Part shown: piece after piece, positions 1-20,127 of the stretch
Layout: each line of letters starts with the position of its first letter
How positions within the stretch are numbered: the first letter of the stretch is position 1
Origin: Cyanophora paradoxa CCMP329
Taxonomy: Eukaryota; Plantae; Glaucophyta
Assembly: GCA_004431415.1 (NCBI GenBank)
Contig: QPMI01000677.1
Location: forward strand, 1-20,127
Direction of reading: 5' to 3'
DNA: 20,127 nt
Notes under the pieces: model-generated
Seen by the model: the letters and a program-made list of their open reading frames with translations, nothing else
Database searches by the model: none
Told to the model about the DNA's origin: nothing
Position numbers and translations under genes: made by a program

Positions 1-120
1 GGGGGGGAGGGGCGGGGACAAGCTCAAGGCCGGAGCCGCCCCGAGGCCGCCCACGAGGCCACCACCCGCGCGCGCCCGCCAGAAGGGGGTTTGGGAGATG
101 AGCTGGAGGTTCCACTCCAT
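1..120 (-). CDS. 5' start of a further gene copy (runs off the left edge)
   Basis: CAT at 118-120 corresponds to the putative ATG, followed by the same N-terminal coding sequence. Confidence 0.6.
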   Translation of the reverse strand, partial: MEWNLQLISQTPFWRARAGGGLVGGLGAAPALSLSPPLPP

Positions 121-3100
121 CTTTCCTCCCCAAAGAGTGTGCTCCTGGGGTCGACAATGCTGCGCAGTTCGGGCATAAGACACAAAAAAAAGCAGCGATC
201 GCTTGGCCAATGAGAAGGCGGTGGACGTCAAGCCCGCGGCGACCGTTAGAACTGAGAACCCAGAAAGCGATCGCCGGCCCAGCAGCTCTTTGTTAGAGGT
301 CGGACTCGCTGGGTATGGCGCCGAACCACAAAGCGATCGCCGAGCAATGAGAAGGCTCTATGCGCGGGGCAGATCTAGCGATCCAATTGAATAGGAATCT
401 CTATGCGAGCAAGCTCGCAGCGCTACGGGAGGCGGCACGCACTGCAGGCGTTGCGTTGGCTGGTGCGACGAACTTGAAGCAGCTCCTGCGCAAGCGATCG
501 CCGGTCAGAGAGCCTTCTCATCGCTCCGGCGATCGCTAGCCCTGGTACCGAGTACTGCGGGCGATCGCAGCAGCGCAACCGTCGGACGACGGACGCGGCG
601 CCGGCGATCGCTTGAAAAAGGCCCCGGCCAGATCCGAGCCCACGGCCGGCGGGCATAGTGCATAGTGCCAAAATTTCGCTCCGAAAACACGCTTTTTAGA
701 AGGATCGGAAGAAAGCGCCCAGGAGGTCCGAGGGGCGGTTCCGGGACGTACCTACTGACTCAGAGCTGCTTGCGCGGGCCCGCCGGCGACGCCATGGTTG
801 AGAGATCGAATCCTGCGCGCCGCCTTACAGCGGCCGAGGAAGGGGCGACGGCTGCAGAATTCGATGATGTGAACCTCGGACAAGCGAAGCGTGTAGCTAG
901 CGCGCCGCCGGCGCCGCGGTAGTGAGCCGATGAAGCGAGCGATGTGTACTCCTCGCGTGCGCGGGCGCGGCGAAGCGCCTGCGGGGCGGGCGTGGCGCCG
1001 CGGGGCTGAGCACGGCGCGCGCGCTGCGAAGCGCTATGCGCGAGCTTTTGCGCGAGCTTTGCGTCGACCCGCGCGCCTCACTTTCGAAGGTCGGGTACCC
1101 CCCGACTCATTCCCCCCTAAACTTGGGGGCTCGGTGGCTTAAAAGCGAAGGCTCTGGGGTACATCGACGAAATTTGACTTGCTCCACAAAATTGCAAGGC
1201 GCTCAAGAACTCTACGCTCACTGGAAGTTCAACTGCGGCCTACAAACTGCTTGCACCGCTCCACTAGCTCATCTAGTCTACCTGGGTCAGCAAACCGATC
1301 CTCCTCGGCCACTAGCGGCTTGCGGAACCATTCTTTCGCAACCGCAACAAATGGTGCGCAGTCCATTGGGCTGCGCTGGTGGTGCCCGAGCGCGCACCAC
1401 CCGCCATCGAGGCGAGAAAAGAATCTCGAGCACGCGGTCAGCTCGGCATCTTGCCTTGAAGATGGAGCCAGCGGTCGTGTGGAAGGTCATATCATGCACA
1501 GGCTCCGAGAGCTGAAGGAGGGCCTGCACTAATGCAGCGGCGTGACTCTTGATGGTGACTCTGCTCGTGATATATATGAGCTCGAGGCAATCAGCAAGAG
1601 TGGTTACTGATATCCATGGACAGAAAAAAGGAAACCACAAGTAGAAAAGGAAGAGGCGCGACGGCCAGTGGTCCCACTCGAGATTGGTGTGAAGCCCCGG
1701 AGGATAACCATTGTTGCCTCGGTGTTGTTCCCGGTACATCAAGCCGGTGCACTTGACTGGAGCGCTGCAGCGCGCGGCACCTTGCGTGGCCGTGCACTCC
1801 AGTGCACCGTCGTTTGGCGGTAGGCGAGCCAGCTTCTCGACGCACGTGCTGCGGGGCTCGCTGCCCTCGCGTCCCGTATCGCGGTTGCGACCACGGCGAT
1901 GCTCCCCCGTACCGATCTGGAGCCTCCTTCCTCCCGTGACATTGCAGGGAACCAGTGCAGTTTCGCCTTCAGGGTATTGCTCAGCGCGTTGAAGTATCGG
2001 TTTCTCGGTGTTCGCCACGCTGCGACGCGCCCAAGTCAGAGCACGTTCAGCGGGAGAAGGGAAATAAGAAGGAAAAGAAACAAAGGAAAAGAAAGAAAAG
2101 AGAAGGGGGTACGCGACCGTCTGTACAAGCAGGACAGGATGGGTGTCGGAATAGGCCGCTCAGGTGTGCCTAGCCATAGAGGCTTGTTTCGCCTCGTGTA
2201 TGGCGGGGCACATACGCCTCAACATCGATGTCCACATCGACCAATTGTCCCGCGCGTTTGGCTGAGTTTCTCGTGAGCTTGAGCATTTGCGATAACCGTT
2301 GCTCGTACCTGTTGGACTTTCCGTGTAGTTCTCCTGTATGCCGTCGCGCCGAGTTCGTCCACCTCGGGTACTCCTCTCCAGAGTCGTTGCCCCCATTCAG
2401 CATCCGGTGTGTTAGAACATCTGACTTGGAGCCCATCTGTTCCAGCACTGCAGCCACTTGCTTCAGAGCCTGAAAGCTGTTCTCCGCTGCGCGACCTGTA
2501 CCGTATTTCTCCTGCACCGGAATTAGAGTTCAGTAACCCCTTCTGTGGCGTCGTCTTCGTACCCCTCGCACGCACCGCCAGCTCTGCTTCATGCGCAGCC
2601 GGGTGAAGAGCTCGTTCGCCGGCGCTTCGTGGTGGAGAACGGCAGGGTTTCCCATTGCCTCGTGGCACGCCTGTGGAGAACGGCAGCGGTACGCGCATCA
2701 GCTCCACGTGTGGGGGGGGGGGTACGCGTAGCGAAGGGGGGGGGGGTTGGAGGGGGGGTAGTCGAACCTCCATTGGACTTGGCGCCTGTTCGGGAGCCGG
2801 GCCTGGGTCTTGACCTGCTTGCCGCGCGGCCTCCCACGCTGCTCGCGCCCGCCTTGCTTGCCGTGCTCCTCGTCGTCGAATGCCTTGGCTAGATCTACAA
2901 GGCCTTTGAATATGAGCTGGTTGGCAATTGTCGCCCACCGCCGAAAACGCGATTTGCGGACAAGGTCTGAGAAGATAATGCCGACTGATATGCTGCTTGC
3001 CGGCCCTGCAAGAAGGCGAAGAAGCTCCTTGCCGCTCTTCCGAACAGCCTGCAGGACCTGCACATCGCTTGCAATCTTGCCGCCACGACCGACATCCCTG

Positions 3101-5229
3101 TTGCCTCCGTACGCGTTGCACTTCCGAAGAAGCTTCTTCACCTCCGGGTACGACACGAGATCGTCCTGCGCCTTGCGCTTCCGCCCTTTCCCACGTGGCA
3201 ACTCTTCCACCAACGCGGCCTCTGCAGCTGCTGCTGCAAGCTCACACATGCATGAAGCCTGCGTCGCCATTGGTAAGAAAAAAACTTTACCCCCCCTCCG
3301 CCCCCCCCCCCCCCCCGGATGCATACCACAGCTGGAGTGATTCGCCTTCCCGTGTCTGCTGCTGTGCTGCGTGCACTGATTGAGCGAGACTGCGGAACTG
3401 GCCCTTCATTTCTTCCTTCGTGCCAAGGTACATTGCTTGCTGGCTGAGCCCGAGAGTCGCTTGCATACGCAGAAGGTTGATTTCAGACTGTCCGTTTGTG
3501 ACCTAATATAAAATTAAGAACATGTTACGAAAAGACAGAGCATGAAAGCATCGTGCACCTCCATGAAAGCATTTGCAAGACCTTGTCCCGTGCAGGCTCA
3601 CGGTCCAACTCAGCGTCTCCTGGCCGCAGGGCCAGAAGCTGTGTGAGCACAGCAGCAGCTGAGCGGATCTCGCCATCATCAGGGCTGCATCACATTTCGG
3701 TTTTCAAAATAGAATGCAGTGATTTGAAGGGGACGTACTGTAGAAATCGAGTGATGAATTGCTCGATCGCCCGTAGAAGAACACCTCTATCCAGAGCGAT
3801 AGGAACATCTTCGATTCAACAGCGTATGATCGTTTGTCATCGCTAGTACTTGTGTCATCCTTGCCCTCCTGAAAGTCCAGAGACAAGATGACCTGACCGG
3901 GCAGCAAGTAAGCAGAAGAAGCACGAGGCAAGCTGGCATGGACACGTGCCAGATCTATCTTCGCAGTCGTCTCTCACGGATGTAGATCTTGTTGGTATAG
4001 AAGCTCGTCACCCGGCCTTTAGCCAGTCGTAGTGCCTGGCTCGAAGGTCCGTATCCACTGCAAACTCACCGTGCGCCCCTGGCACGCCAAGGCCCAGAAA
4101 TGCACACTGTGCCTGCAGTGAGTGCCGTGCTTCAACTGGCCAGAAGATAGATGCTTACGTCCATATCAATGAGCTCATCGAGTTGAGAAGAGCTTGAGGT
4201 ATCTTCCTTGTCGCCAGCAGCTATATCAGCATCTGGATGAGGGTCGGGACCGGTGCGCTGAAGGCTTGGCGATTCGAGTGCGACCTAAATGCAGTATCTC
4301 ATGGCGAATCTCAAGCTAAAGAAGATCGAGGACGCACAGTGCTCATGAAGTGCTTCAGAGCATGGAGATCCTCCAGTGTCCGTGTCCGGTTCTTTGCTGG
4401 TTCACCTCGAAACTGCAACCGACAAGCGTTCGCCTGAGCTTGCCGAGCCGCTTCTGTCACCTGGATAAGTTGGTCTTAGATTCCATTCGATCAATTCTTT
4501 GAGCTGCAGAGCACCTCATCAAGCCAATCAACACAACTCTGAAATTTGGGGCCTCGAAACGCTCCCTTTGTGCCCACAAACAGGTTGCGCAGTGCACGCA
4601 AGCATCTGGCAGGGGGCAGGTCGACGATGATGTCCTCCACATAATGCACTTGGGGGTCCAGATCTGCAAACATGATAAGACAAAGAGGCGGCGTGCAGAT
4701 TTCACAGAGAAACGCACAGATCTCGAAGGGTGCATGTGCTTGTCGCCTTCTGCCAGCGCACCAGCGTCGCGCCCGCTGCGCCGTCCAGGGCGCCACCCGC
4801 CGCGCCGCCTCCGTGCGTCCGCGCGCCCCTCCCGCGCCGCCTCCGCGCCTCCGCGCCGCCTCCCGCGCCGCGCACCGGGCCGGGGGAGGGGAGGGACAGG
4901 GCCGGGGGGGGCGGCCCGGGGGAGGGGCGGGGCCGGGGGAGGGACGGGCCGGGGGAGGGCGGGGCGGGGAGGGGGGGGGGCCGGCGGGGAGGGCGGGCCG
5001 GGGGGAGGGCGGGCCGGGGGAGGGCGGGGCCCGGGGGAGGGCGGGGCCGGGGGAGGGGCGGGGGGGGGGGGGGAGGGGCGGCCCGGGGAGGGCGGGCCGG
5101 GGGAGGGCGGGCCCGGGGGGAGGGCGGCCGGGGGAGGGACGGGCCCGGGGGAGGGCGGGCCCGGGGAGGGACGGGCCCGGGGGAGGGGCGGGGCCGGGGG
5201 AGGGGCGGGCCCGGGGGAGGGAGGGCGGG
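17..5229. repeat. Tandem unit copy 1 (~5.21 kb; one copy of the internal 151 bp repeat)
   Basis: Anchor GACAAGCTCAAGGCCGGAGCC recurs at 17, 5230, 10542 and 15880, and the intervening sequence is colinear and near-identical. The unit phase is arbitrary. Confidence 0.97.
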
Positions 5230-5333
5230 GACAAGCTCAAGGCCGGAGCCGCCCCCGAGGCCGCCCACGAGGCCACCACCCGCCGCGCGGCCCGCCAGAA
5301 GGGGTTGGGAGATGAGCTGGAGGTCCACTCCAT
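1218..5333 (-). CDS. Multi-exon gene (~15 exons) for a ~1,050 aa protein of unknown function; Pro/Gly-rich N-terminus, basic NLS-like PRGKGRKRK
   Basis: Manual splicing of the copy consensus gives one open frame from ATG (MEWTSSSSPNPLLAGR, 5333) to TGA (...VGPQLNFQ*, 1218). Introns in + coordinates: 4664-4717, 4461-4514, 4285-4337, 4113-4158, 3893-3949 (GC-AG), 3809-3864 (GC-AG; or 3809-3849 GT-AG), 3685-3738, 3503-3558, 3259-3326, 2671-2767, 2512-2575, 2020-2117, 1849-1912, 1561-1662. Donors include GTGCGT, GTAAGC, GTACGT and GTATGC; acceptors are mostly YAG. In-frame stops shared by all copies fall inside these introns. The start codon and in-frame introns are less certain. Confidence 0.8.
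4878..5230 (+). repeat. G-rich ~18 bp minisatellite (GGGGGAGGG(G/A)CGGG(G/C)CC-like) encoding PPPGP(A/V) on the minus strand
   Basis: Visible tandem G-run units, also at ~10208-10542 and ~15485-15880. The copy 3 translation gives PPPGPAPPPGPVPPPGPA. Confidence 0.9.
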
Positions 5334-8300
5334 CTCTTCCTCCCCAAAGAGTGTGCTCCTGGGTCGACATGCTGCGCAGTCGGGCATAAGACACCGAAAA
5401 GCAGCGATCGTTGGCCATGAGAAGGCGGGACGTCAAGCCCGCGGCGACCGTAGAACTGAGAACCCAGAAGCGATCGCCGGCCCAGCAGCTCTTTGTAGAG
5501 GTCGGACCGCTGGGTATGGCGCCGAACACAAAGCGATCGCCAGCAATGAGAGGCTCTATGGCGGGGCAGATCTAGCGATCCAATGAATAAGAATCTCTAT
5601 GCGAGCAAGCTCGCAGCGCTACGGGAGGCGGGCACGCACTGCAGGGTTGGCGTTGGCTGGGCGACGAACTTGAAGCAGCTCCTGCGCAAGCGATCGCCGG
5701 TCAGAGCGCGGGGCAGATCTAGCGATCCAATTGATAGAGAATCTCTATGCGAGCAAGCTCGCAGCGCTACGGGAGGCGGGCACGCACTGCAGGCGTTGGC
5801 GTTGGCTGGTGCGACGAACTTGAAGCAGCTCCTGCGCAAGCGATCGCCGGTCAGAGAGCCTTCTCATCGCTCCGGCGATCGCTAGGCCCTGGTACCGAGT
5901 ACTCCGGGCGATCGCCAGCGCGAAACCGCGGACGACGGACGCGGCGCGGCGATCGCTTGAAAAAGGCCCGGCCAGATCCGAGCCACGGCCGGCGGCATAG
6001 TGAACATAGTGCCAAATTCGCTCCGAAAAACACGCTTTTTAGAAGGATCGGAAGAAAGCGCGCCAGGCAGGTCCGAGGGCGGTTCCGGACGTACCTACTG
6101 ACTCAGAGCTGCTTGCGCTGGGCCCGCGGCGACGCCATGGTTGAGAGATCGAATCCCTGCGCGCCGCCTTACACGGCCGAGGAAGGGGCGACGGCTGCAG
6201 AATTCGATGATGTGAACCTCGGACAAGCGAAAGCGTGAGCTAGCGCGCCGCCGGCGCCGCGGGTGAGCCGATGAAGCGAGCATGTGTACTCCTCGCGTGC
6301 GGGCGCGGGAAGTCGCCTGCGGGGCGGCGTGGCGCCGCGGGGCTGAGCACGGCGCGCGCGCTGCGAAGCGCTATGCGCGAGCTTTGCGCGAGCTTTGCGT
6401 CGACGCCGCGCCTCACTTTCGAAGGTCGGGGTACCCCCCGACTCATTCCCCCCTAAACTTGGGGGCTCGGTGGCTTAAAAGCGAAAGCTCTGGGTACATC
6501 GACGAAATTTGACTTGCTCCACAAAATTGCAAGCGCTCAAGAACTCTACGCTCACTGGAAGTTCAACTGCGGCCCTACAAACTGCTTGCAACCGCTCCAC
6601 TAGCTCATCTAGTCTACCTGGGTCAGCAAACCGATCCTCCTCGGCCACTAGCGGCTTGCGGAACCATTCTTTCGCAACCGCAACAAATGGTGCGCAGTCC
6701 ATTGGGCTGGCTGGTGTGCCCGCGCATACCACCCGACCCCATCGAGGCGAGAAAAGAATCTCGAGCACGCGGTCAGCTCGCATCTTGCCTTGAAGATGGA
6801 GCAGCGGTCGTGTGGAAGGTCATATCATGCACAGGCTCCGAGAGCTGAAGGAGGGCCTGCACTAATGCAGCGGCGTGACTCTTGATGGTGACTCTGCTCG
6901 TGATATATATGAGCTCGAGGCAATCAGCAAGAGTGGTTACTGATATCCATGGACAGAAAAAAGGAAACCACAGTAGAAAAAGGAAGAGGCGCACGGCCAG
7001 TGGTCCCACTCGAGATTGGTGAAGCCCCGGAGGATAACCATTGTTGCCTCCGGTGTTGTTCCCGGTACATCAAGCCGGTGCACTTGACTGGAGACGCTGC
7101 AGCGCGCGCACCTTGCGTGGCCGTGCACTCCAGTGCACCGTCGTTTGGCGGTAGCGAGCCAGCTTCTCGACGTACGCACGTGCTGCGGGGCTCGCTGCCC
7201 TCGCGTCCCGTATCGCGGTTGCGACCACGGCGATGCTCCCCCGTACGATCTGGAGCCTCCTTCCTCCCGTGACATTGCAGGGAACCAGTGCAGTTTTCGC
7301 CTTCAGGGTATGCTCAGCGCGTTGAAGTATCGGTTCTCGGTGTTCGCCACGCTGCGACGCGCCCAAGTCAGAGCACGTTCAGCGGAGAAGGGAAATAAGA
7401 AGGAAAAGAAACAAGGAAAAGAAGAAAAGAGAAGGGGGGTACGCGGACCGTCTGTACAAGCAGGACAGGATGGGTGTCGGAATAGGCGCTCAGGTGTGCC
7501 TAGCCATAGAGGCTTGTTTCGCCTCGTGTATGGCGGAGGCACATACGCCTCAACATCGATGTCCACATCGACCAATTGTCCCGCGCCGTTTTGGCTGAGT
7601 TTCTCGTGAGCTTGAGCATTTGCGATAACCGTTGCTCGTACCTGTTGGACTTTCGTGTAGTTCTCCTGTATGCCGTCGCGCCGAGTTCGTCCACCTCGGG
7701 TACTCCTCTCCAGAGTCGTTGCCCCCATTCAGCATCCGTGTGTTAGAAAATCTGACTTGGAGCCCATCTGTTCAGCACTGCAGCCACTTGCTTCAGAGCC
7801 TGAAAAGCTGTTCTCCGCTGCGCGACCTGTACCGTATTTCTCCTGCACCGGAATTAGAGTTCAGTAACCCCTTCTGTGGCGTCGTCTTCGTACCCCTCGC
7901 ACGCACCGCCAGCTCTGCTTCATGCGCAGCCGGGTGAAGAGCTCGTTCGCCGGCGCTTCGTGGTGGAAGAACGGAGGGTTTCCCCATTGCCTCGTGGCAC
8001 GCCTGTGGAGAACGGCAGGGTACGCGCATCAGCTCCACGTGTCGGGGGGGGGGGGTACGCGTAGCGAAGGGGGAGGGGGGTTGGAGGGGGGGTAGTCGAA
8101 CCTCCATTGGACTTGGCGCCTGTTCGGGAGCCGGGCCTGGTCTTGACCTGCTTGCGCCGCCTCCCACGCTGCTCGCGCCCGCCTTGCGTTGCCGTGCTCC
8201 TCGTCGTCGAATGCCTTGGCTAGATCTACAAGGCCTTTGAATATGAGCTGGTTGGCAATTGTCGCCCACCGCCGAAAACGCGATTTGCGGACAAGGTCTG

Positions 8301-8618
8301 AGAAGATAATGCCGACTGATATGCTGCTTGCCGGCCCTGCAAGAAGGCGAAGAAGCTCCTTGCCGCTCTTCCGAACAGCCTGCAGGACCTGCACATCGCT
8401 TGCAATCTTGCCGCACGACCGACATCCCTGTTGCCTCCGTACGCGTTGCACTTCCGAAGAAGCTTCTTCACCTCCGGTACGACACGAGATCGTCCTGCGC
8501 CTTGCGCTTCCGCCCTTTCCCACGTGGCAACTCTTCCACCAACGCGGCCTCTGCAGCTGCTGCTGCAAGCTCCACACATGCATGAAGCCTGCGTCGCCAT
8601 TGTAAAAAAAAAAACTTT

Positions 8619-8649
<31 letters not shown>

Positions 8650-10541
8650 ATGCATACCACAGCTGGAGTGATTCGCCTTCCCGTGTCTGCTGCTGTGCTG
8701 CGTGCACTGATTGAGCGAGACTGCGGAACTGGCCTTCATTTCTTCCTTCGTGCCAAGGTACATTGCTTGCTGGCTGAGCCCGAGAGTCGCTTGCATACGC
8801 AGAAGGTTGATTTCAGACTGTCCGTTTGTGACCTAATATAAAATTAAGAACATGTTACGAAAGAACAGAGCATGAAGCATCGTGCACCTCCATGAAAGCA
8901 TTTGCAAGACCTTGTGCCCGTGCAGGCTCACGGTCCAACTCAGCGTCTCCTGGCCGCAGGGCCAGAAGCTGTGTGAGCACAGCAGCAGCTGAGCGGATCT
9001 CGCCATCATCAGGGCTGCATCAACATTTCGGTTTTCAAAATAGAATGCAGTGATTTGAAGGGGACGTACTGTAGAAATCGAGTGATGAATTGCTCGATCG
9101 CCCGTAGAAGAACACCTCTATCCAGAGCGATAGGAACATCTTCGATTCAACAGCGTATGATCGTTTGTCATCGCTAGTACTTGTGTCATCCTTGCCCTCC
9201 TGAAAGTCCAGAGACAAGATGACCTGACCGGCAGCAAGTAAGCAGAAGAAGCACGAGGCAAGCTGCATGGACACGTGCCAGACTATCTCTCGCAGTCGTC
9301 TCTCACGGATGTAGATCTTGTTGGTATAGAAGCTCGTCACCCGGGCCTTTAGCCAGTCGTAGTGCCTGGCTCGAGGTCGTATCCACTGCAAACTCACCGT
9401 GCGCCCCTGGCACGCAAAGCCCAGAAATGCACACTGTGCCTGCAGTGAGTGCCGTGCTTCAACTGGCCAAGATAGATAGATGCTTACGTCCATATCAATG
9501 AGCTCATCGAGTTGAGAAGAGCTTGAGGTATCTTCCTTGTCGCCAGCAGCTATATCAGCATCTGGATGAGGGTCGGGACCGGTGCGCTGAAGGCTTGGCG
9601 ATTCGAGTGCGACCTAAATGCAGTATCTCATGGCGAATCTCAAGCTAAAGAAGATCGAGGACGCACAGTGCTCATGAAGTGCTTCAGAGCATGGAGATCC
9701 TCCAGTGTCCGTGTCCGGTTCTTTGCTGGTTCACCTCGAAACTGCAACCGACAAGCGTTCGCCTGAGCTTGCCGAGCCGCTTCTGTCACCTGGAAAGTTG
9801 GTCTTAGATTCCATTCGATCAATTCTTTGAGCTGCAGAGCACCTCATCAAGCCAATCAACACAACTCTGAAATTTGGGGCCTCGAAACGCTCCCTTTGTG
9901 CCCACAAACAGGTTGCGCAGTGCACGCAAGCATCTGGCAGGGGGCAGGTCGACGATGATGTCCTCCACATAATGCACTTGGGGGTCCAGATCTGCAAACA
10001 TGATAAGACAAAGAGGCGGCGTGCAGATTTCACAGAGAAACGCACAGATCTCGAAGGGTGCATGTGCTTGTCGCCTTCTGCCAGCGCCACCAGCGTCGCC
10101 GCCCGCTGCGCCGTCCAGGCGCCACCCGCCGCGCCGCCTCCGTGCCGCCTCCCGCGCCGCCTCCCGCCGCCTCCGCGCGCCTCCGCGCCGCCTCCCGCGC
10201 CGCGCACCGGGCCGGGGGAGGGGAGGACAGGGCCGGGGGGGGCGGGCCCGGGGGAGGGCGGGGCGGGGGAGGGACGGGCCCGGGGAGGGGCGGGGCCGGG
10301 GGAGGGGGCGGGGGAGGGCGGGCCCGGGGGAGGGGCGGCCCGGGGGAGGGCGGGCCCGGGGGAGGGGGCGGGGGAGGGGGGGGCGGGGAGGGGCGGGCCC
10401 GGGGAGGGGGGGCCCGGGGGAGGGGCGGGCCCGGGGAGGCGGCCGGGGGAGGACGGGCCCGGGGAGGGCGGGCCCGGGGGAGGGACGGGCCCGGGGGAGG
10501 GCGGGCCGGGGGAGGGGCGGGGCCCGGGGGAGGGAGGGCGG
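5230..10541. repeat. Tandem unit copy 2 (~5.31 kb)
   Basis: Colinear with the other copies; differences are mostly 1-nt homopolymer indels. Confidence 0.97.
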
Positions 10542-10645
10542 GACAAGCTCAAGGCCGGAGCCGCCCCCGAGGCCGCCCACGAGGCCACCACCCGCCGCGC
10601 GGCCCGCCAGAAGGGGTTGGGAGATGAGCTGGAGGTCCACTCCAT
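6552..10645 (-). CDS. Copy 2 of the same multi-exon gene
   Basis: Same exon/intron structure as 1218-5333; private frameshifts are homopolymer-type read errors. Confidence 0.8.
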
Positions 10646-10850
10646 CTCTTCCTCCCAAAGAGTGTGCTCCTGGGTCGACATGCTGCGCAGTCGGGCATAA
10701 GACACCGAAAAGCAGCGATCGCTTGGCCAATGAGAAGGCGGTGGACGTCAAGCCCGCGGCGACCGTTAGAACTGAGAACCCAGAAGCGATCGCCGGCCCA
10801 GCAGCTCTTTGTTAGAGGTCGGACTCGCTGGGTATGGCGCCGAACACAAA

Positions 10851-11208
10851 GCGATCGCCGAGCAATGAGAAGGCTCTATGCGCGGGGCAGATCTAGCGAT
10901 CCAATTGAATAGAGAATCTCTATGCGAGCAAGCTCGCAGCGCTACGGGAGGCGGGCACGCACTGCAGGCGTTGGCGTTGGCTGGTGCGACGAACTTGAAG
11001 CAGCTCCTGCGCAAGCGATCGCCGGTCAGAGCGCGGGGCAGATCTAGCGATCCAATTGAATAGAGAATCTCTATGCGAGCAAGCTCGCAGCGCTACGGGA
11101 GGCGGGCACGCACTGCAGGCGTTGGCGTTGGCTGGTGCGACGAACTTGAAGCAGCTCCTGCGCAAGCGATCGCCGGTCAGAGAGCCTTCTCATCGCTCCG
11201 GCGATCGC
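10851..11208. repeat. 27/28 bp inverted repeat pair enclosing the 151 bp repeats
   Basis: Left arm 10851-10877 is GCGATCGCCGAGCAATGAGAAGGCTCT. The reverse complement of the right arm 11181-11208 is GCGATCGCCGGAGCGATGAGAAGGCTCT (1 gap, 1 mismatch). Present in every unit. Confidence 0.9.
10880..11181 (+). repeat. 151 bp direct tandem repeat, two copies
   Basis: 10880-11030 equals 11031-11181 (GCGCGGGGCAGATCTAGCGATCC...GCGATCGCCGGTCAGA). Also two copies at ~5560-5855 and 16221-16522, but only one at ~362-509. Confidence 0.95.
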
Positions 11209-11751
11209 TAGGCCTGGTACGAGTACTCCGGGCGATCGCCAGCGCGAACCGTCGGACGACGGACGCGGCGCCGGCGATCGCTTGAAAAAGGCCCCGGCCA
11301 GATCCGAGCCCACGGCCGGCGGGCATAGTGAACATAGTGCCAAAATTTCGCTCCGAAAACACGCTTTTTAGAAGGATCGGAAGAAAGCGCGCCAGGCAGG
11401 TCCGAGGGCGGTTCCGGACGTACCTACTGACTCAGAGCTGCTTGCGCTGGGCCGCCGGGCGACGCCATGGTTGAGAGATCGAATCCCTGCGCGCCGCCTT
11501 ACAGCGCGGAAGGGCGACGGCTGCAGAATTCGATGATGTGAACCTCGGACAAGCGAAAGCGTGTAGCTAGCGCGCCGCCGGCGCCGCGGGTGAGCCGATG
11601 AAGCGAGCGATGTGTACTCTCTCGTGCGCCGGGCGCGGCGAAGTCGCCTGCGGGGCGGGCGTGGCGCCGCGGGCTGAGCACGGCGCGCGCGCTGCGAAGC
11701 GCTATGCGCGAGCTTTGCGCGAGCTTTGCGTCGACGCGCGCGCCTCACTTT

Positions 11752-11835
11752 CGAAGGTCGGGGTACCCCCCGACTCATTCCCCCCTAAACTTGGGGGCTC
11801 GGTGCTTAAAAGCGAAGGCTCTGGGGTACATCGAC
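11752..11835. other. Hairpin/direct-repeat module ~50-130 bp downstream of the stop codon
   Basis: CGAAGGTCGGGGTACCCCCCGAC, then CCCCC-TAAACTT-GGGGG, then CGAAGGCTCTGGGGTACATCGAC. Also at ~1085-1170, ~6420-6503 and ~17108-17192. Confidence 0.5.
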
Positions 11836-11884
11836 GAAATTTGACTTGCTCCACAAAATTGCAAGGCGCTCAAGAACTCTACGC

Positions 11885-14800
11885 TCACTGGAAGTTCAAC
11901 TGCGGCCCTACAAACTGCTTGCACCGCTCCACTAGCTCATCTAGTCTACCTGGGTCAGCAAACCGATCCTCCTCGGCCACTAGCGGCTTGCGGAACCATT
12001 CTTTCGCAACCGCAACAAATGGTGCGCAGTCCATTGGGCTGCGCTGGTGGTGCCCGGCGCATACCACCCGACCCCATCGAGGCGAGAAAAGAATCTCGAG
12101 CACGCGGTCAGCTCGGCATCTTGCCTTGAGATGGAGCAGGTCGTGTGGAAGGTCATATCATGCACAGGCTCCGAGAGCTGAAGAGGGCCTGCACTAATGC
12201 AGCGGCGTGACTCTTGATGTGACTCTGCTCGTATATATATGAGCTCGAGGCAATCAGCAAGAGTGGTTACTGATATCCATGGACAGAAAAAAGGAAACCA
12301 CAAGTAGAAAAAGGAAGAGGCGCACGGCCAGTGGTCCCACTCGAGATTGGTGAAGCCCCGGAGGAACCATTTGCCTCCGGTGTTGTTCCCGGTACATCAA
12401 GCCTGCACTTGACTGGAGACGCTGCAGCGCGCGGCACCTTGCGTGGCCGTGCACTCCAGTGCACCGTCGTTTGGCGGTAGGCGAGCCAGCTTCTCGACGT
12501 ACGCACGTGCTGCGGGGCTCGCTGCCCTCGCGTCCCGTATCGCGGTTGCGACCACGGCGATGCTCCCCCGTACCGATCTGGAGCCTCCTTCCTCCCGTGA
12601 CATTGCAGGGAACCAGTGCAGTTTCGCCTTCAGGTATTGCTCAGCGCGTTGAAGTATCGGTTCTCGGTGTGTTCGCCACGCTGCGACGCGCCCAAGTCAG
12701 AGCACGTTCAGCGGGAAAGGGAAATAAGAAGGAAAAGAAACAAAGGAAAAGAAAGAAAGAGAAGGGGGGTACGCGACCGTCTGTACAAGCAGGACAGGAT
12801 GGGTGTCGGAATAGGCCGCTCAGGTGTGCCTAGCCATAGAGGCTTGTTTCCTCGTGTATGGCGGAGGCACATACGCCTCAACATCGATGTCCACATCGAC
12901 AATTGTCCCGCGCCGTTTGGCTGAGTTTTTCTCGTGAGCTTGAGCATTTGCGATAACCGTTGCTCGTACCTGTTGGACTTTCCGTGTAGTTCTCCTGTAT
13001 GCCGTCGCGCCGAGTTCGTCCACCTCGGGGTACTCCTCTCCAGAGTCGTTGCCCCCATTCAGCATCCGTGTTGACGCTTAGCACCTGTACCTGTATTTCT
13101 CCTGCACCGGAATTAGAGTTCAGTAACCCCTTCTGTGGCGTCGTCTTCGTACCCCTCGCACGCACCGCCAGCTCTGGCTTCATGCGGCCGGGTGAAGAGC
13201 TCGTTCGCCGGCGCTTCGTGGTGGAGAACGGCAGGGTTTCCCATTGCCTCGTGGCACGCCTGTGGAGAACGGCAGGGTACGCGCATCAGCTCCACGTGTC
13301 GGGGGGGGGGGGGGTACGCGTAGCGAAGGGGGGGGGGGGGGGGGGGGGGGTAGTCGAACCTCCATTGGACTTGGCGCCTGTTCGGGAGCCGGGCCTGGGT
13401 CTTGACCTGCTTGCCGCGCGGCCTCCCACGCTGCTCGCGCGCCGCCTTGCGTTGCCGTGCTCCTCGTCGTCGAATGCCTTGGCTAGATCTACAAGGCCTT
13501 TGAATATGAGCTGGTTGGCAATTGTCGCCCACCGCCGAAAACGCGATTTGCGGACAAGGTCTGAAGATAATGCCGACTGATATGCTGCTTGCCGGCCCTG
13601 CAAGAAGGCGAAGAAGCTCCTTGCCGCTCTTCCGAACAGCCTGCAGGACCTGCACATCGCTTGCAATCTTGCCGCCACGACCGACATCCCTGTTGCCTCC
13701 GTACGCGTTGCACTTCCGAAGAAGCTTCTTCACCTCCGGGTACGACACGAGATCGTCCTGCGCCTTGCGCTTCCGCCCTTTCCCACGTGGCAACTCTTCC
13801 ACCAACGCGGCCTCTGCAGCTGCTGCTGCAAGCTCCACACATGCATGAAGCCTGCGTCGCCATTGGTAAGAAAAAAACTTTACCCCCCTCCGCCCCCCCC
13901 CCCCCCCCGGATGCATACCACAGCTGGAGTGATTCGCCTTCCCGTGTCTGCTGCTGTGCTGCGTGCACTGATTGAGCGAGACTGCGGAACTGGCCCTTCA
14001 TTTCTTCCTTCGTGCCAAGTACATTGCTTGCTGGCTGAGCCCGAGAGTCGCTTGCATACGCAGAAGGTTGATTTCAGACTGTCCGTTTGTGACCTAATAT
14101 AAAATTAAGAACATGTTACGAAAAGACAGAGCATGAAAGCATCGTGCACCTCCATGAAAGCATTTGCAAGACCTTGTGCCCGTGCAGGCTCACGGTCCAA
14201 CTCAGCGTCTCTCCTGGCCGCAGGGCCAGAAGCTGTGTGAGCACAGCAGCAGCTGAGCGGATCTCGCCATCATCAGGGGCTGCATCACATTTCGGTTTTC
14301 AAAATAGAATGCAGTGATTTGAAGGGGACGTACTGTAGAATCGAGTGATGAATTGCTCGATCGCCCGTAGAAGAACACCTCTATCCAGAGCGATAGGAAC
14401 TCTTCGATTCAACAGCGTATGATCGTTTGTCATCGCTAGTACTTTGTGTCATCCTTGCCCTCCTGAAAGTCCAGAGACAAGATGACCTGACCGGGCAGCA
14501 AGTAAGCAGAAGAAGCACGAGGCAAGCTGGCATGGACACGTGCCAGATCTATCTCTCGCAGTCGTCTCTCACGGATGTAGATCTTGTTGGTATAGAAGCT
14601 CGTCACCCGGCCTTTAGCCAGTCGTAGTGCCTGGCTCGAAGGTCCGTATCCACTGCAAACTCACCGTGCGCCCTGGCACGCCAAGGCCCAGAAATGCACA
14701 CTGTGCCTGCAGTGAGTGCCGTGCTTCAACTGGCCAAGATAGATAGATGCTTACGTCCATATCAATGAGCTCATCGAGTTGAGAAGAGCTTGAGGTATCT

Positions 14801-15984
14801 TCCTTGTCGCCAGCAGCTATATCAGCATCTGGATGAGGGTCGGGACCGGTGCGCTGAAGGCTTGGCGATTCGAGTGCGACCTAAATGCAGTATCTCATGG
14901 CGAATCTCAAGCTAAAGAAGATCGAGGACGCACAGTGCTCATGAAGTGCTTCAGAGCATGGAGATCCTCCAGTGTCCGTGTCCGGTTCTTTGCTGGTTCA
15001 CCTCGAAACTGCAACCGACAAGCGTTCGCCTGAGCTTGCCGAGCCGCTTCTGTCACCTGGATAAGTTGGTCTTAGATTCCATTCGATCAATTCTTTGAGC
15101 TGCAGAGCACCTCATCAAGCCAATCAAACAACTCTGAAATTTGGGGCCTCGAAACGCTCCCTTTGTGCCCACAAACAGGTTTGCGCAGTGCACGCAAGCA
15201 TCTGGCAGGGGGCAGGTCGACGATGATGTCCTCCACAATAATGCACTTGGGGGTCCAGATCTGCAAACATGATAAGACAAAGAGGCGGCGTGCAGATTTC
15301 ACAGAGAAACGCACAGATCTCGAAGGGTGCATGTGCTTGTCGCCTTCTGCCAGCGCCACCAGCGTCGCCGCCCGCTGCGCCGTCCAGGGCGCCACCCGCC
15401 GCGCCGCCTCCCGTGCCGCCTCCCGCGCCGCCTCCCGCGCCGCCTCCCGCGCCGCCTCCCGCGCCGCCTCCCGCGCCGCGCACCGGGCCGGGGGGAGGGG
15501 GAGGGACAGGGCCGGGGGGGGGGCGGGCCCGGGGGAGGGGCGGGGCCGGGGGAGAGGACGGGCCCGGGGGGAGGGGCGGGGCCGGGGGGGGGGGGGGGGG
15601 GGGGGGGGGCGGGGGGGAGGGCGGGCCCGGGGGGGGGCGGGCCCGGGGGGAGGGGCGGGGCCCGGGGGGAGGGGCGGGGCCGGGGGAGGGGGGGGGGGCG
15701 GGGGGAGGCGGGCCCGGGGGAGGGGCGGGCCCGGGGGGAGGGGCGGGCCCGGGGGGAGGGGCGGGGCCGGGGGGAGGGACGGGCCCGGGGGGAGGGGCGG
15801 GCCCGGGGGGAGGGACGGGCCCGGGGGGAGGGGCGGGGCCGGGGGGAGGGGCGGGGCCCGGGGGAGGGGGAGGGGCGGGGACAAGCTCAAGGCCGGAGCC
15901 GCCCCCGAGGCCGCCCACGAGGCCACCACCCGCCGCGCGGCCCGCCAGAAGGGGGTTGGGAGATGAGCTGGAGGTCCACTCCAT
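11885..15984 (-). CDS. Copy 3 of the same multi-exon gene
   Basis: Same structure. ORF 15124..16092 reads exon 1 intact (MEWTSSSS...PPPGPA repeats...AGGG repeats...AHAPFEI). ORF 11885..12103 is the end of the last exon. Confidence 0.8.
15402..15478 (+). repeat. 12 bp tandem repeat (GCCGCCTCCCGC)n encoding AGGG repeats on the minus strand
   Basis: About 6 units in copy 3; degraded by read errors at ~4803-4870 and ~10131-10203. Confidence 0.85.
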
Positions 15985-18900
15985 CTCTTCCTCCCCAAAG
16001 AGTGTGCTCCTGGGGTCGACATGCTGCGCAGTCGGGCATAAGACACCGAAAAGCAGCGATCGCTTGGCCAATGAGAAGGCGGTGGACGTCAAGCCCGCGG
16101 CGACCGTTAGAACTGAGAACCCAGAAGCGATCGCCGGCCCAGCAGCTCTTTGTTAGAGGTCGGACTCGCTGGGTATGGCGCCGAACACAAAGCGATCGCC
16201 GAGCAATGAGAAGGCTCTATGCGCGGGGCAGATCTAGCGATCCAATTGAATAGAGAATCTCTATGCGAGCAAGCTCGCAGCGCTACGGGAGGCGGGCACG
16301 CACTGCAGGCGTTGGCGTTGGCTGGTGCGACGAACTTGAAGCAGCTCCTGCGCAAGCGATCGCCGGTCAGAGCGCGGGGCAGATCTAGCGATCCAATTGA
16401 ATAGAGAATCTCTATGCGAGCAAGCTCGCAGCGCTACGGGAGGCGGGCACGCACTGCAGGCGTTGGCGTTGGCTGGTGCGACGAACTTGAAGCAGCTCCT
16501 GCGCAAGCGATCGCCGGTCAGAGAGCCTTCTCATCGCTCCGGCGATCGCTAGGCCCTGGTACCGAGTACTCCGGGGCGATCGCCAGCGCGAACCGTCGGA
16601 CGACGGACGCGGCGCCGGCGATCGCTTGAAAAAGGCCCCGGCCAGATCCGAGCCCACGGCCCGGGCATAGTGAACATAGTGCCAAAATTTCGCTCCGAAA
16701 ACGCTTTTTAGAAGGATCGGAAGAAAGCGCGCCCAGGCAGGTCCGAGGGCGGTTCCGGGACGTACCTACTGACTCAGAGCTGCTTGCGCTGGGCCCGCCG
16801 GGCGACGCCATGGTTGAGAGATCGAATCCCTGCGCGCCGCCTTACAGCGGCCGAGGAAGGGCGACGGCTGCAGAATTCGATGATGTGAACCTCGGACAAA
16901 GCGAAAGCGTGTAGCTAGCGCGCGCCGGCGCCGCGGGTGAAGCCGATGAAGCGAGCGATGTGTACTCCTCGCGTGCGCGGGCGCGGCGAAGTCGCCTGCG
17001 GGGCGGGCGTGGCGCCGCGGGGCTGAGCACGGCGCGCGCGCGCGCTGAAGCGAACGCTATGCGCGAGCTTTGCGCGAGCTTTGCGTCGACGCCGCGCGCC
17101 TCACTTTCGAAGGTCGGGGTACCCCCCCGACTCATTCCCCCCTAAACTTGGGGCTCGGTGGCTTAAAAGCGAAGGCTCTGGGGTACATCGACGAAATTTG
17201 ACTTGCTCCACAAAATTGCAAGGCGCTCAAGAACTCTACGCTCACTGGAAGTTCAACTGCGGCCCTACAAACTGCTTGCACCGCTCCACTAGCTCATCTA
17301 GTCTACCTGGGTCAGCAAACCGATCCTCCTCGGCCACTAGCGGCTTGCGGAACCATTCTTTCGCAACCGCAACAAATGGTGCGCAGTCCATTGGGCTGCG
17401 CTGGTGGTGCCCGGCGCATACCACCCGACCCCATCGAGGCGAGAAAAGAATCTCGAGCACGCGGTCAGCTCGGCATCTTGCCTTGAAGATGGAGCCAGCG
17501 GTCGTGTGGAAGGTCATATCATGCACAGGCTCCGAGAGCTGAAGGAGGGCCTGCACTAATGCAGCGGCGTGACTCTTGATGGTGACTCTGCTCGTGATAT
17601 ATATGAGCTCGAGGCAATCAGCAAGAGTGGTTACTGATATCCATGGACAGAAAAAAGGAAACCACAAGTAGAAAAAGGAAGAGGCGCACGGCCAGTGGTC
17701 CCACTCGAGATTGGTGAAGCCCCGGAGGATAACCATTGGTTGCCTCCGGTGTTGTTCCCGGTACATCAAGCCGGTGCACTTGACTGGAGACGCTGCAGCG
17801 CGCGGCACCTTGCGTGGCCGTGCACTCCAGTGCACCGTCGTTTGGCGGTAGGCGAGCCAGCTTCTCTCGACGTACGCACGTGCTGCGGGGCTCGCTGCCC
17901 TCGCGTCCCGTATCGCGGTTGCGACCCACGGCGATGCTCCCCCGTACCGATCTGGAGCCTCCTTCCTCCCGTGACATTGCAGGGAACCAGTGCAGTTTCG
18001 CCTTCAGGGTATTGCTCAGCGCGTTGAAGTATCGGTTCTCGGTGTTCGCCACGCTGCGACGCGCCCAAGTCAGAGCACGTTCAGCGGGAGAAGGGAAATA
18101 AGAAGGAAAAGAAACAAAGGAAAAGAAAGAAAAGAGAAGGGGGGTACGCGGACCGTCTGTACAAGCAGGACAGGATGGGTGTCGGAATAGGCCGCTCAGG
18201 TGTGCCTAGCCATAGAGGCTTGTTTCGCCTCGTGTATGGCGGAGGCACATACGCCTCAACATCGATGTCCACATCGACCAATTGTCCCGCGCCGTTGTGG
18301 CTGAGTTTCTCGTGAGCTTGAGCATTTGCGATAACCGTTGCTCGTACCTGTTGGACTTTCCGTGTAGTTCTCCTGTATGCCGTCGCGCGCGAGTTCGTCC
18401 ACCTCGGGGTACTCCTCTCCAGAGTCGTTGCCCCCATTCAGCATCCGGTGTGTTAGAACATCTGACTTGGAGCCCATCTGTTCCAGCACTGCAGCCACTT
18501 GCTTCAGAGCCTGAAAGCTGTTCTCCGCTGCGCGACCTGTACCGTATTTCTCCTGCACCGGAATTAGAGTTCAGTAACCCTTCTGTGGCGTCGTCTTCGT
18601 ACCCCTCGCACGCACCGCCAGCTCTGGCTTCATGCGCAGCCGGGTGAAGAGCTCGTTCGCCGGCGGCTTCGTGGTGGAGAACGGCAGGGTTTCCCATTGC
18701 CTCGTGGCACGCCTGTGGAGAACGGCAGGGTACGCGCATCAGCTCCACGTGTCGGGGGGGGGGGGGGTACGCGTAGCGAAGGGGGAGGGGGGGTTGGAGG
18801 GGGGGGGTAGTCGAACCTCCATTGGACTTGGCGCCTGTTCGGGAGCCGGGCCTGGGTCTTGACCTGCTTGCCGCGCGGCCTCCCACGCTGCTCGCGCCCG

Positions 18901-20127
18901 CCTTGCGTTGCCGTGCTCCTCGTCGTCGAATGCCTTGGCTAGATCTACAAGGCCTTTGAATATGAGCTGGTTGGCAATTGTCGCCCACCGCCGAAAACGC
19001 GATTTGCGGACAAGGTCTGAGAAGATAATGCCGACTGATATGCTGCTTGCCGGCCCTGCAAGAAGGCGAAGAAGCTCCTTGCCGCTCTTCCGAACAGCCT
19101 GCAGGACCTGCACATCGCTTGCAATCTTGCCGCCACGACCGACATCCCTGTTGCCTCCGTACGCGTTGCACTTCCGAAGAAGCTTCTTCACCTCCGGTAC
19201 GACACGAGATCGTCCTGCGCCTTGCGCTTCCGCCCTTTCCCACGTGGCAACTCTTCCACCAACGCGGCCTCTGCAGCTGCTGCTGCAAGCTCCACACATG
19301 CATGAAGCCTGCGTCGCCATTGGTAAGAAAAAAAAACTTTACCCCCCTCCGCCCCCCCCCCCCCCCCCCGGATGCATACCACAGCTGGAGTGATTCGCCT
19401 TCCCGTGTCTGCTGCTGTGCTGCGTGCACTGATTGAGCGAGACTGCGGAACTGGCCCTTCATTTCTTCTCCTTCGTGCCAAGGTACATTGCTTGCTGGCT
19501 GAGCCCGAGAGTCGCTTGCATACGCAGAAGGTTGATTTCAGACTGTCCGTTTGTGACCTAATATAAAATTAAGAACATGTTACGAAAAGACAGAGCATGA
19601 AAGCATCGTGCACCTCCATGAAAGCATTTGCAAGACCTTGTGCCCGTGCAGGCTCACGGTCCAACTCAGCGTCTCCTGGCCGCAGGGCCAGAAGCTGTGT
19701 GAGCACAGCAGCAGCTGAGCGGATCTCGCCATCATCAGGGGCTGCATCACATTTCGGTTTTCAAAATAGAATGCAGTGATTTGAAGGGGACGTACTGTAG
19801 AAATCGAGTGATGAATTGCTCGATCGCCCGTAGAAGAACACCTCTATCCAGAGCGATAGGAACATCTTCGATTCAACAGCGTATGATCGTTTGTCATCGC
19901 TAGTACTTGTGTCATCCTTGCCCTCCTGAAAGTCCAGAGACAAGATGACCTGACCGGGCAGCAAGTAAGCAGAAGAAGCACGAGGCAAGCTGGCATGGAC
20001 ACGTGCCAGATCTATCTCTCGCAGTCGTCTCTCACGGATGTAGATCTTGTTGGTATAGAAGCTCGTCACCGGGCCTTTAGCCAGTCGTAGTGCCTGGCTC
20101 GAAGGTCCGTATCCACTGCAAACTCAC
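15880..20127. repeat. Tandem unit copy 4 (partial, runs off the window)
   Basis: Colinear with about positions 17-4070 of copy 1, plus a second 151 bp repeat. Confidence 0.97.
17242..20127 (-). CDS. Copy 4 of the same gene, 3' part (5' end outside the window)
   Basis: ORFs 17242..17835, 18739..19320 and 19761..20069 overlap exons of the reconstructed gene. Confidence 0.78.

Follow-up and report, generated by a model that had tools for sequence, protein, structure and literature searches.

A homogeneous head-to-tail array of a 5.3 kb, possibly transposon-like, single-gene unit in Cyanophora paradoxa

Which kind of genetic unit can fill a contig with nothing but copies of itself? The question is raised by contig QPMI01000677.1 of Cyanophora paradoxa CCMP329 (assembly GCA_004431415.1), of which the whole stretch from position 1 to 20,127 of the forward strand (20,127 nucleotides, nt), hereafter the window, was analysed. 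Self-BLAST gave 96-98% identity at offsets of about 5.3 kb over the entire window, that is, 3.8 head-to-tail copies, and found unique DNA nowhere, so that the repeat has no flank on either side, in agreement with a preliminary description of at least 3.8 copies without unique flanking DNA. Each unit holds one spliced gene, flanking motif clusters in opposed orientation, a 29-bp inverted repeat and, at the junction, 151-bp direct repeats. The explanation that we favour, though tentatively and with a little less than even confidence, places the window within a homogeneous head-to-tail multimer, of recent origin, of a transposon-like selfish unit of about 5.3 kb with a protease-type accessory domain, which recombination at its end repeats would have formed in a GC-rich eukaryote whose introns are short. 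The sequence itself shows the repeat structure and the gene model, and from it we infer DNA binding, protease activity, mobility and topology. The copies, to which no strand applies, are as follows:

17-5229, repeat copy 1 (5213 bp; a single 151-bp unit only)
5230-10541, repeat copy 2 (5312 bp)
10542-15879, repeat copy 3 (5338 bp; a garbled gap of about 70 bp at 13072-13093)
15880-20127, repeat copy 4, partial (4248 bp; stops within exon 5; fewest errors)

A majority-vote unit was built from the copies and used for their comparison and for the mapping of exons. Each copy differs from it by 20-74 single-base insertions or deletions (indels) and by only 3-6 apparent substitutions. The indels are deletion-biased and mostly lie in homopolymers. 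Of the 213 positions with a difference, 194 concern one copy alone and the other 19, which are shared, fall nearly all in homopolymers; homopolymer compression leaves 0-1 substitution per copy. Since the indels are private and homopolymeric and at most one substitution per copy survives compression, the differences are long-read errors on essentially identical templates, and the earlier observation that no convincing substitution is common to the copies holds. The frameshifts in the gene copies are private read errors, and a G-rich tract described below has an equal number of marker units in every copy. The garbled gap in copy 3, probably a read error too, suggests that the window is a single, poorly corrected read. 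The sole candidate for a real structural variant, which the data may reflect, is the count of 151-bp units, one at the first junction and two at each of the other three.

These observations bear on a library artefact, in which whole-genome or rolling-circle amplification would have copied a chance-circularised genomic fragment. Such an artefact would agree with the window's resemblance to one poorly corrected long read (deletion-biased private indels, one garbled gap), but a single amplified circle should keep its repeat count constant between passes, and each unit holds exactly one whole gene, while direct and inverted repeats accompany the motif dyad at which units join, an arrangement not to be expected of a random fragment; we consider this explanation quite improbable. 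The window had also been put forward as a circular or rolling-circle element, a proposal that nothing specific supports. A contig taken from the interior of a long chromosomal array of recent origin would show identical copies without flanks just as well, and the change from one to two 151-bp units between adjacent junctions speaks slightly against one circle having been read round several times.

The gene of each unit lies on the minus strand, with the following parts:

1218-5371, minus strand, gene, first full copy (13 exons)
about 5371-4718, 4663-4515, 4460-4338, 4284-4159 and 4112-3944, minus strand, exons 1 to 5 of this copy
3892-3739, 3684-3559, 3502-3327 and 3258-2768, minus strand, exons 6 to 9
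2670-2576, 2511-2118, 2019-1663 and 1560 (or about 1607)-1218, minus strand, exons 10 to 13
6552-10682, minus strand, gene, second full copy
11885-16023, minus strand, gene, third full copy, in which the Pro- and Gly-rich stretch of exon 1 forms one open frame
17242-20127, minus strand, gene, fourth copy, 3' part (exons 5-13)
15399-15879 (also 4800-5229 and 10129-10541), minus strand, low-complexity part of exon 1, with Pro-rich and Gly-rich repeats
3172-3192, minus strand, basic patch in exon 9 resembling a nuclear localisation signal (putative function), followed by a predicted helical region

The predicted product has about 1,150 residues (about 1,143-1,159 codons), with the start codon placed within some 20 bp. 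Eleven of the 12 introns have firm GT-AG ends and measure 48-101 nt. The final intron has 102 nt if bounded by GT-AG and about 54 nt if a GC donor is used, and coding-potential scores prefer the shorter form. Introns this short, with donors of this kind, are reminiscent of basidiomycete fungi or of some algae. A 26-nt intron call was dropped and a 56-nt intron with a typical donor put in its place. Exons 2-13 chain about 905 codons with no internal stop, which bears out the description of one large, intron-rich gene per copy; GC at codon positions 1/2/3 of the gene model is 0.66/0.46/0.62, and exons 12 and 13, when held out, prefer the modelled frame by 25-55 bits. The low-complexity part of exon 1 consists of about 22 units of 18 bp, which encode a six-residue Pro-rich repeat, and seven Gly-rich units of 12 bp. 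Because the commonest variant of the 18-bp unit is synonymous in the Pro-rich frame only, this G-rich tract is most likely coding sequence of exon 1 and not spacer. On its template strand, exon 1 presents a run of G-tracts of about 400 nt with strong G-quadruplex potential (15484-15879, 4876-5229 and 10208-10541, plus strand), and the window starts at the edge of such a run, where read breaks often fall.

What makes the unit look transposon-like is its spacer, in which these features were found:

16024-17241, no strand, spacer or control region of about 1.2 kb, from the gene start to the stop codon of the next copy
16056-16514, plus strand, cluster of five GCGATCGC-core sites (16056, 16127, 16192, 16356, 16507) upstream of the gene start
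16542-16625, minus strand, cluster of three GCGATCGC sites in opposite orientation (16542, 16576, 16618), about 620 bp downstream of the stop codon
16190-16218 (also at 331 and 10849), plus strand, inverted repeat arm 1, about 29 bp
16522-16550 (also at 509, 5855 and 11181), minus strand, inverted repeat arm 2, about 29 bp
16221-16522 (also 5561-5856 and 10880-11182, with just one unit at about 362-510), no strand, pair of exact direct repeats of 151 bp, enclosed by the inverted arms

Eight perfect GCGATCGC sites occur in the 1.2-kb spacer against 0.18 expected (maximum of three in 5000 simulations), and a motif count over the gene found none there, so the earlier reading of a motif-dense spacer stands. 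Judged by their flanks, the five sites upstream of the start point one way and the three past the stop the other; besides the five-site cluster, two more, degenerate, sites of this type lie inside the 151-bp units. The inverted repeat of about 29 bp is the best-matching pair of GCGATCGC sites and encloses the 151-bp units. Because these units carry partly degenerate copies of the end motif, they are part of the control region and not foreign target DNA. The order within the unit is repeat, arm, gene, arm, repeat, with both one-repeat and two-repeat junctions present, and we read this layout as that of joined transposon ends. Insertion of a satellite was ruled out, the 151-bp unit itself bearing degenerate end motifs and no target duplication fitting. 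In its eight letters GCGATCGC is identical to the cyanobacterial HIP1 octamer; a link is unlikely because the gene has spliceosomal introns and GCGATCGC is strictly confined to the spacer. Each 151-bp unit also contains two adjacent perfect 7-bp hairpins (16250-16279, 16401-16430).

The C-terminus of the product provides the second line of evidence. In proteases of the Ulp1/Peptidase C48 family (clan CE) a His-Trp motif is followed by Asp or Asn about 17 residues on and by Gln-x5-Cys 54-70 residues past the His. Two motifs are pertinent here:

17692-17703 (also at 1665, 6997 and 12328), minus strand, His-Trp motif at the end of exon 12, candidate catalytic His, with an Asn five residues before it
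17381-17398 (also at 1356, 6692 and 12024), minus strand, Gln-x4-Asp-Cys motif of exon 13, whose Gln is a candidate for the oxyanion residue and whose Cys is one for the catalytic residue

Exons 12-13 therefore read Asn-x4-His-Trp and then Gln-x4-Asp-Cys, the order of Ulp1/C48 proteases, and these motifs lead us to regard a C-terminal Ulp1/C48-like (SUMO/NEDD8-protease-like) domain as somewhat probable. Natural C48 domains were gathered by motif scan, one of them validated against Pfam and SENP structures, and unjoined stretches of the window were scored. With a matrix from 24 C48 domains the Cys block ranked first among 8933 six-frame positions, and the best-scoring pair of His and Cys coincided with the predicted sites; in coding frames only, the combined score of His-Trp and Gln/Cys was reached by 2 of 20,000 shuffles. 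The distance from His to Cys is 70 or 86 residues depending on the choice of the last intron, versus 54-70 in 90 C48 domains. Single-sequence folds of exons 9 and 13 had a predicted local distance difference test score of about 42, so that fold searches with them yield no more than leads; one such lead is the set of weak Foldseek matches between the exon-13 model, itself of low confidence, and the NEDD8 protease Den1 (1xt9; probability 0.51, TM score 0.43, E 0.54). A homologue search with E. coli ElaD for the C48 profile returned close ElaD relatives only.

Some side observations concern this region and the reference proteins. The middle of exon 12 (1750-1850, minus strand) has weak coding scores and a typical donor and may hold a further intron, which, if present, would bring the N-terminal half of the protease-like domain nearer to normal length. 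An 860-residue protein from a giant-virus metagenome-assembled genome (MAG; 8781-11363, minus strand of its contig), used as a reference only, has a SENP1-like Ulp1 domain and, by eye, also an OTU protease and a tyrosine recombinase. The Ulp1-type Cys motif was also met at four loci in one Nitrospirales MAG, in Chlamydiales and in many rhizobia.

Does the product resemble any known protein? Searches were run exon by exon, and most exons encode 40-60 residues, which limits their power; comparison with full-length proteins covered exons 5-6 only, against a set of 1.84 billion representatives, in which no relative was found, the single match being a spurious repeat protein. Exon by exon, Pfam, NCBIfam and PHROGs gave no credible match (a sub-threshold Herpes_UL56 match in Pfam was taken as chance) and a PDB sequence search none. 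Neither exon 9 nor exons 12-13 found anything among 5.8 billion proteins, a search whose candidates were 0.55-1.75 times the query length and which was thus blind to full-length relatives. An exact look-up of ten raw open reading frames, phage and plasmid BLAST, and scans of viral (including IMG/VR), metagenome and prokaryote contigs with protein and spacer DNA were without match, the contig scans revealing no other locus with the unit; the exon-13 model had no significant match in BFVD, and Rfam and tRNA searches of the window returned nothing. So far, within the searched collections, the protein appears to be an orphan.

A motif scan of exons 2-13 found no HUH/HUQ, Walker A, reverse-transcriptase or CxxC motif, and no intact DDE motif was found. 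The preliminary description had recognised no HUH Rep, helicase, DDE transposase, reverse transcriptase or capsid, and the Pfam, viral and motif searches were equally blank. Since no HUH, helicase, recombinase or intact DDE motif was detected, self-replication by rolling circle is unsupported; the broader idea of a selfish, amplified single-gene unit fares better, as it fits the mirrored clusters, the inverted and direct repeats and the orphan protein. By eye, exon 6 suggested a PD-(D/E)xK nuclease, exon 9 a SAP-like helix-loop-helix and exon 11 a primase-like DxD, but no tool backed any of these candidates. An IMG/VR contig (135-5317) that is filed as a virus proved to be a broken Gypsy-type long-terminal-repeat retrotransposon, apparently of plant type, pieces of which served as references.

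The mirrored site clusters at both ends of a single gene, together with the probable C48 domain, fit a DNA-transposon-like unit, and the following course can be proposed. The product of about 1,150 residues would be nuclear, and the motif clusters would be bound by it or by a partner made elsewhere, as transposases bind subterminal repeats. The Ulp1/C48-like domain is predicted to strip SUMO, NEDD8 or ubiquitin and would thereby relieve host silencing. Transposon-borne domains of this type are commonly credited with relief of host silencing. Among the DNA transposons of fungi, C48 belongs to the usual accessory domains (PMC5751038). Two-repeat junctions would result from end-to-end joining of units and one-repeat junctions from recombination between 151-bp repeats, after which the array may have been lengthened by unequal exchange or by excision of circles and their re-integration; homogeneous multimers of such units are attributed to unequal exchange at direct repeats or to circles (PMC9587614; PMC5932611). 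As for the recombinase or transposase activity, its catalytic domain may have become degenerate or may be provided in trans.

Several observations weigh against this explanation. A transposase or recombinase domain was detected neither by exon-by-exon Pfam searches nor by the motif scan of exons 2-13, and a degenerate Gypsy/Ginger integrase proposed by eye in exons 5-8 failed block scoring, blocks of a fetched retroelement integrase ranking from 5th to beyond 1000th. No target-site duplication or flank is visible in the window, and the absent 151-bp unit falls in the most error-rich kilobase and could be a collapse during read correction. As for the protease, the C48 hypothesis was framed post hoc, the unrestricted six-frame test of His and Cys pairs was not significant (20 of 60 nulls), a C48 profile hidden Markov model gave no score on the exon stretches, and the third position of the triad shows no evident Asp or Asn. 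Finally, CCAAT-like words occur among the upstream copies of the motif, and these copies could serve as promoter elements.

Such words in the upstream cluster also suit another explanation, that of a lineage-specific host gene, for instance a divergent Ulp1-family protease, recently multiplied in tandem through recombination of its flanking 151-bp repeats, the motifs being promoter and terminator elements. The gene is intact and intron-rich with normal codon bias, and the Pfam and motif scans found no catalytic domain of a mobile element, as this explanation would have it; however, identical motif clusters flank the gene in mirror orientation, a 29-bp inverted repeat accompanies them, and exons 5-6 lack any relative in the set of 1.84 billion proteins. 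We regard a host gene as rather doubtful.

A nuclear plasmid or persistent extrachromosomal circle of about 5.3 kb, bearing a single gene and an origin of iteron-like type and seen here as a natural or assembly-made concatemer, is unlikely in our judgement. It would account for 20 kb without unique flank or real substitutions. The size of the unit and its single-gene layout recall the Dictyostelium Ddp2 plasmids. Only two families of nuclear plasmids have been characterised and others are possibly overlooked (PMC11962162). The unit shares with yeast 2-micron and Dictyostelium Ddp plasmids a size of about 5-6 kb and repeats in the control region (PMC11962162); unlike them it has 12 introns, and no sequence similarity to them was detected. 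HUH, helicase and recombinase motifs are absent from exons 2-13, the number of 151-bp units differs between neighbouring junctions, and plasmid, phage, viral and metagenome collections gave no match. Equally unlikely is that the unit stands for an undescribed family of self-amplifying eukaryotic elements, perhaps even for nuclear plasmids of a third kind, in which the single spliced protein would bind the mirrored GCGATCGC clusters and combine an unrecognised nuclease or recombinase fold with a deSUMOylase-like anti-silencing domain. The suggestion of a new class was not borne out: should the Ulp1-like domain at the C-terminus be real, it would link the protein with a theme already known from DNA transposons (PMC2836005; PMC5751038).

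How, then, does the unit compare with known elements, given that a transposon-like multimer is the preferred reading? Like the C48-bearing KDZ/Zisupton, MULE and CACTA elements, it encodes a large protein with a candidate Ulp1-like domain, but in contrast to KDZ/Zisupton, which are marked by CxC cysteine clusters and an RNase H-like KDZ core, there are no cysteine clusters (0-4 Cys per exon) and no Pfam transposase match exon by exon. Mirror-oriented subterminal repeats, as in the unit, are found in CACTA and hAT elements. Bari1 encodes a recognisable Tc1-like transposase, whereas the protein of the unit is an orphan. Arrays of the Bari1 type, of 32-130 copies, are likewise homogeneous, consist of whole elements head to tail and exceed read length (PMC5932611). 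Multimers of KolobokP, for which unequal exchange or circles were proposed, are also head-to-tail arrangements of a DNA element of more than 4 kb around terminal direct repeats (PMC9587614), but these repeats are of 450 or 660 bp instead of 151 bp and have terminal inverted repeats of their own, the inverted arms of the unit lie beside its repeats and not at the repeat ends, and neither DDE transposase nor His-Me nuclease was found in the unit. Ginger1 transposons have C-terminal Ulp1 or OTU domains, introns and a length of 2.6-7 kb (PMC2836005), and the unit agrees with them in size, in its single intron-containing gene, in its short inverted repeats and, if the candidate domain is real, in a C-terminal Ulp1 domain. 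Unlike Ginger1 with its Gypsy-like integrase, it has no detectable H2C2 finger, rve domain or DDE triad (Pfam; no CxxC in exons 2-13), has 12 introns versus 0-4, displays no 4-bp (CCGG) target duplication in the window, and possesses inverted arms that begin AGAG/GAGC, with mutually unmatched flanks, in place of TGT...ACA ends.

Replitrons and Helitrons, which are defined by an HUH or HUQ motif II followed by a YxxK motif III, resemble the unit as single-gene elements with direct repeats near their ends and possible tandem copies (PMC10288648), but exons 2-13 contain two isolated YxxK without an upstream HUH/HUQ, and the fused PIF1-type helicase of Helitrons is absent (no Walker A in these exons, no Pfam match). 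In contrast to Crypton and other tyrosine-recombinase elements, whose catalytic signature is R...HxxR...Y, the unit has a single HxxR, which belongs to the protease-like motif of exon 13 and is not followed by a Tyr, and Pfam gave no match; unlike in viruses, no capsid or viral replication protein was matched in IMG/VR, PHROGs or phage records. Judged by its sequence features, the unit would thus fall outside the definitions of Helitron, Replitron, Ginger1, KolobokP, KDZ and Crypton elements. If mobile, it would combine the end architecture of a DNA transposon and a probable protease accessory domain with no recognisable transposase, and would represent a very divergent superfamily or accessory-gene units that amplify alone. 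If a circle, it would add to the only two characterised families of nuclear plasmids (PMC11962162), and if an amplified host gene or an artefact, it would be an orphan protein of modest interest.

Some minor features of the spacer complete the description. A possible small gene lies on the plus strand at 16810-16950 and at equivalent positions in the other copies; it consists of an ATG and a short acidic stretch, for which the coding scores are weakly positive, is flanked by donor-like sites, and would turn the unit into a two-gene unit. The stretch 16880-17100 is rich in CpG and GCGC and includes an 11-bp tandem, and a further hairpin lies at about 17107-17130, downstream of the stop. The observed/expected ratio of CpG is 1.3 in the spacer versus 0.89 in the gene.

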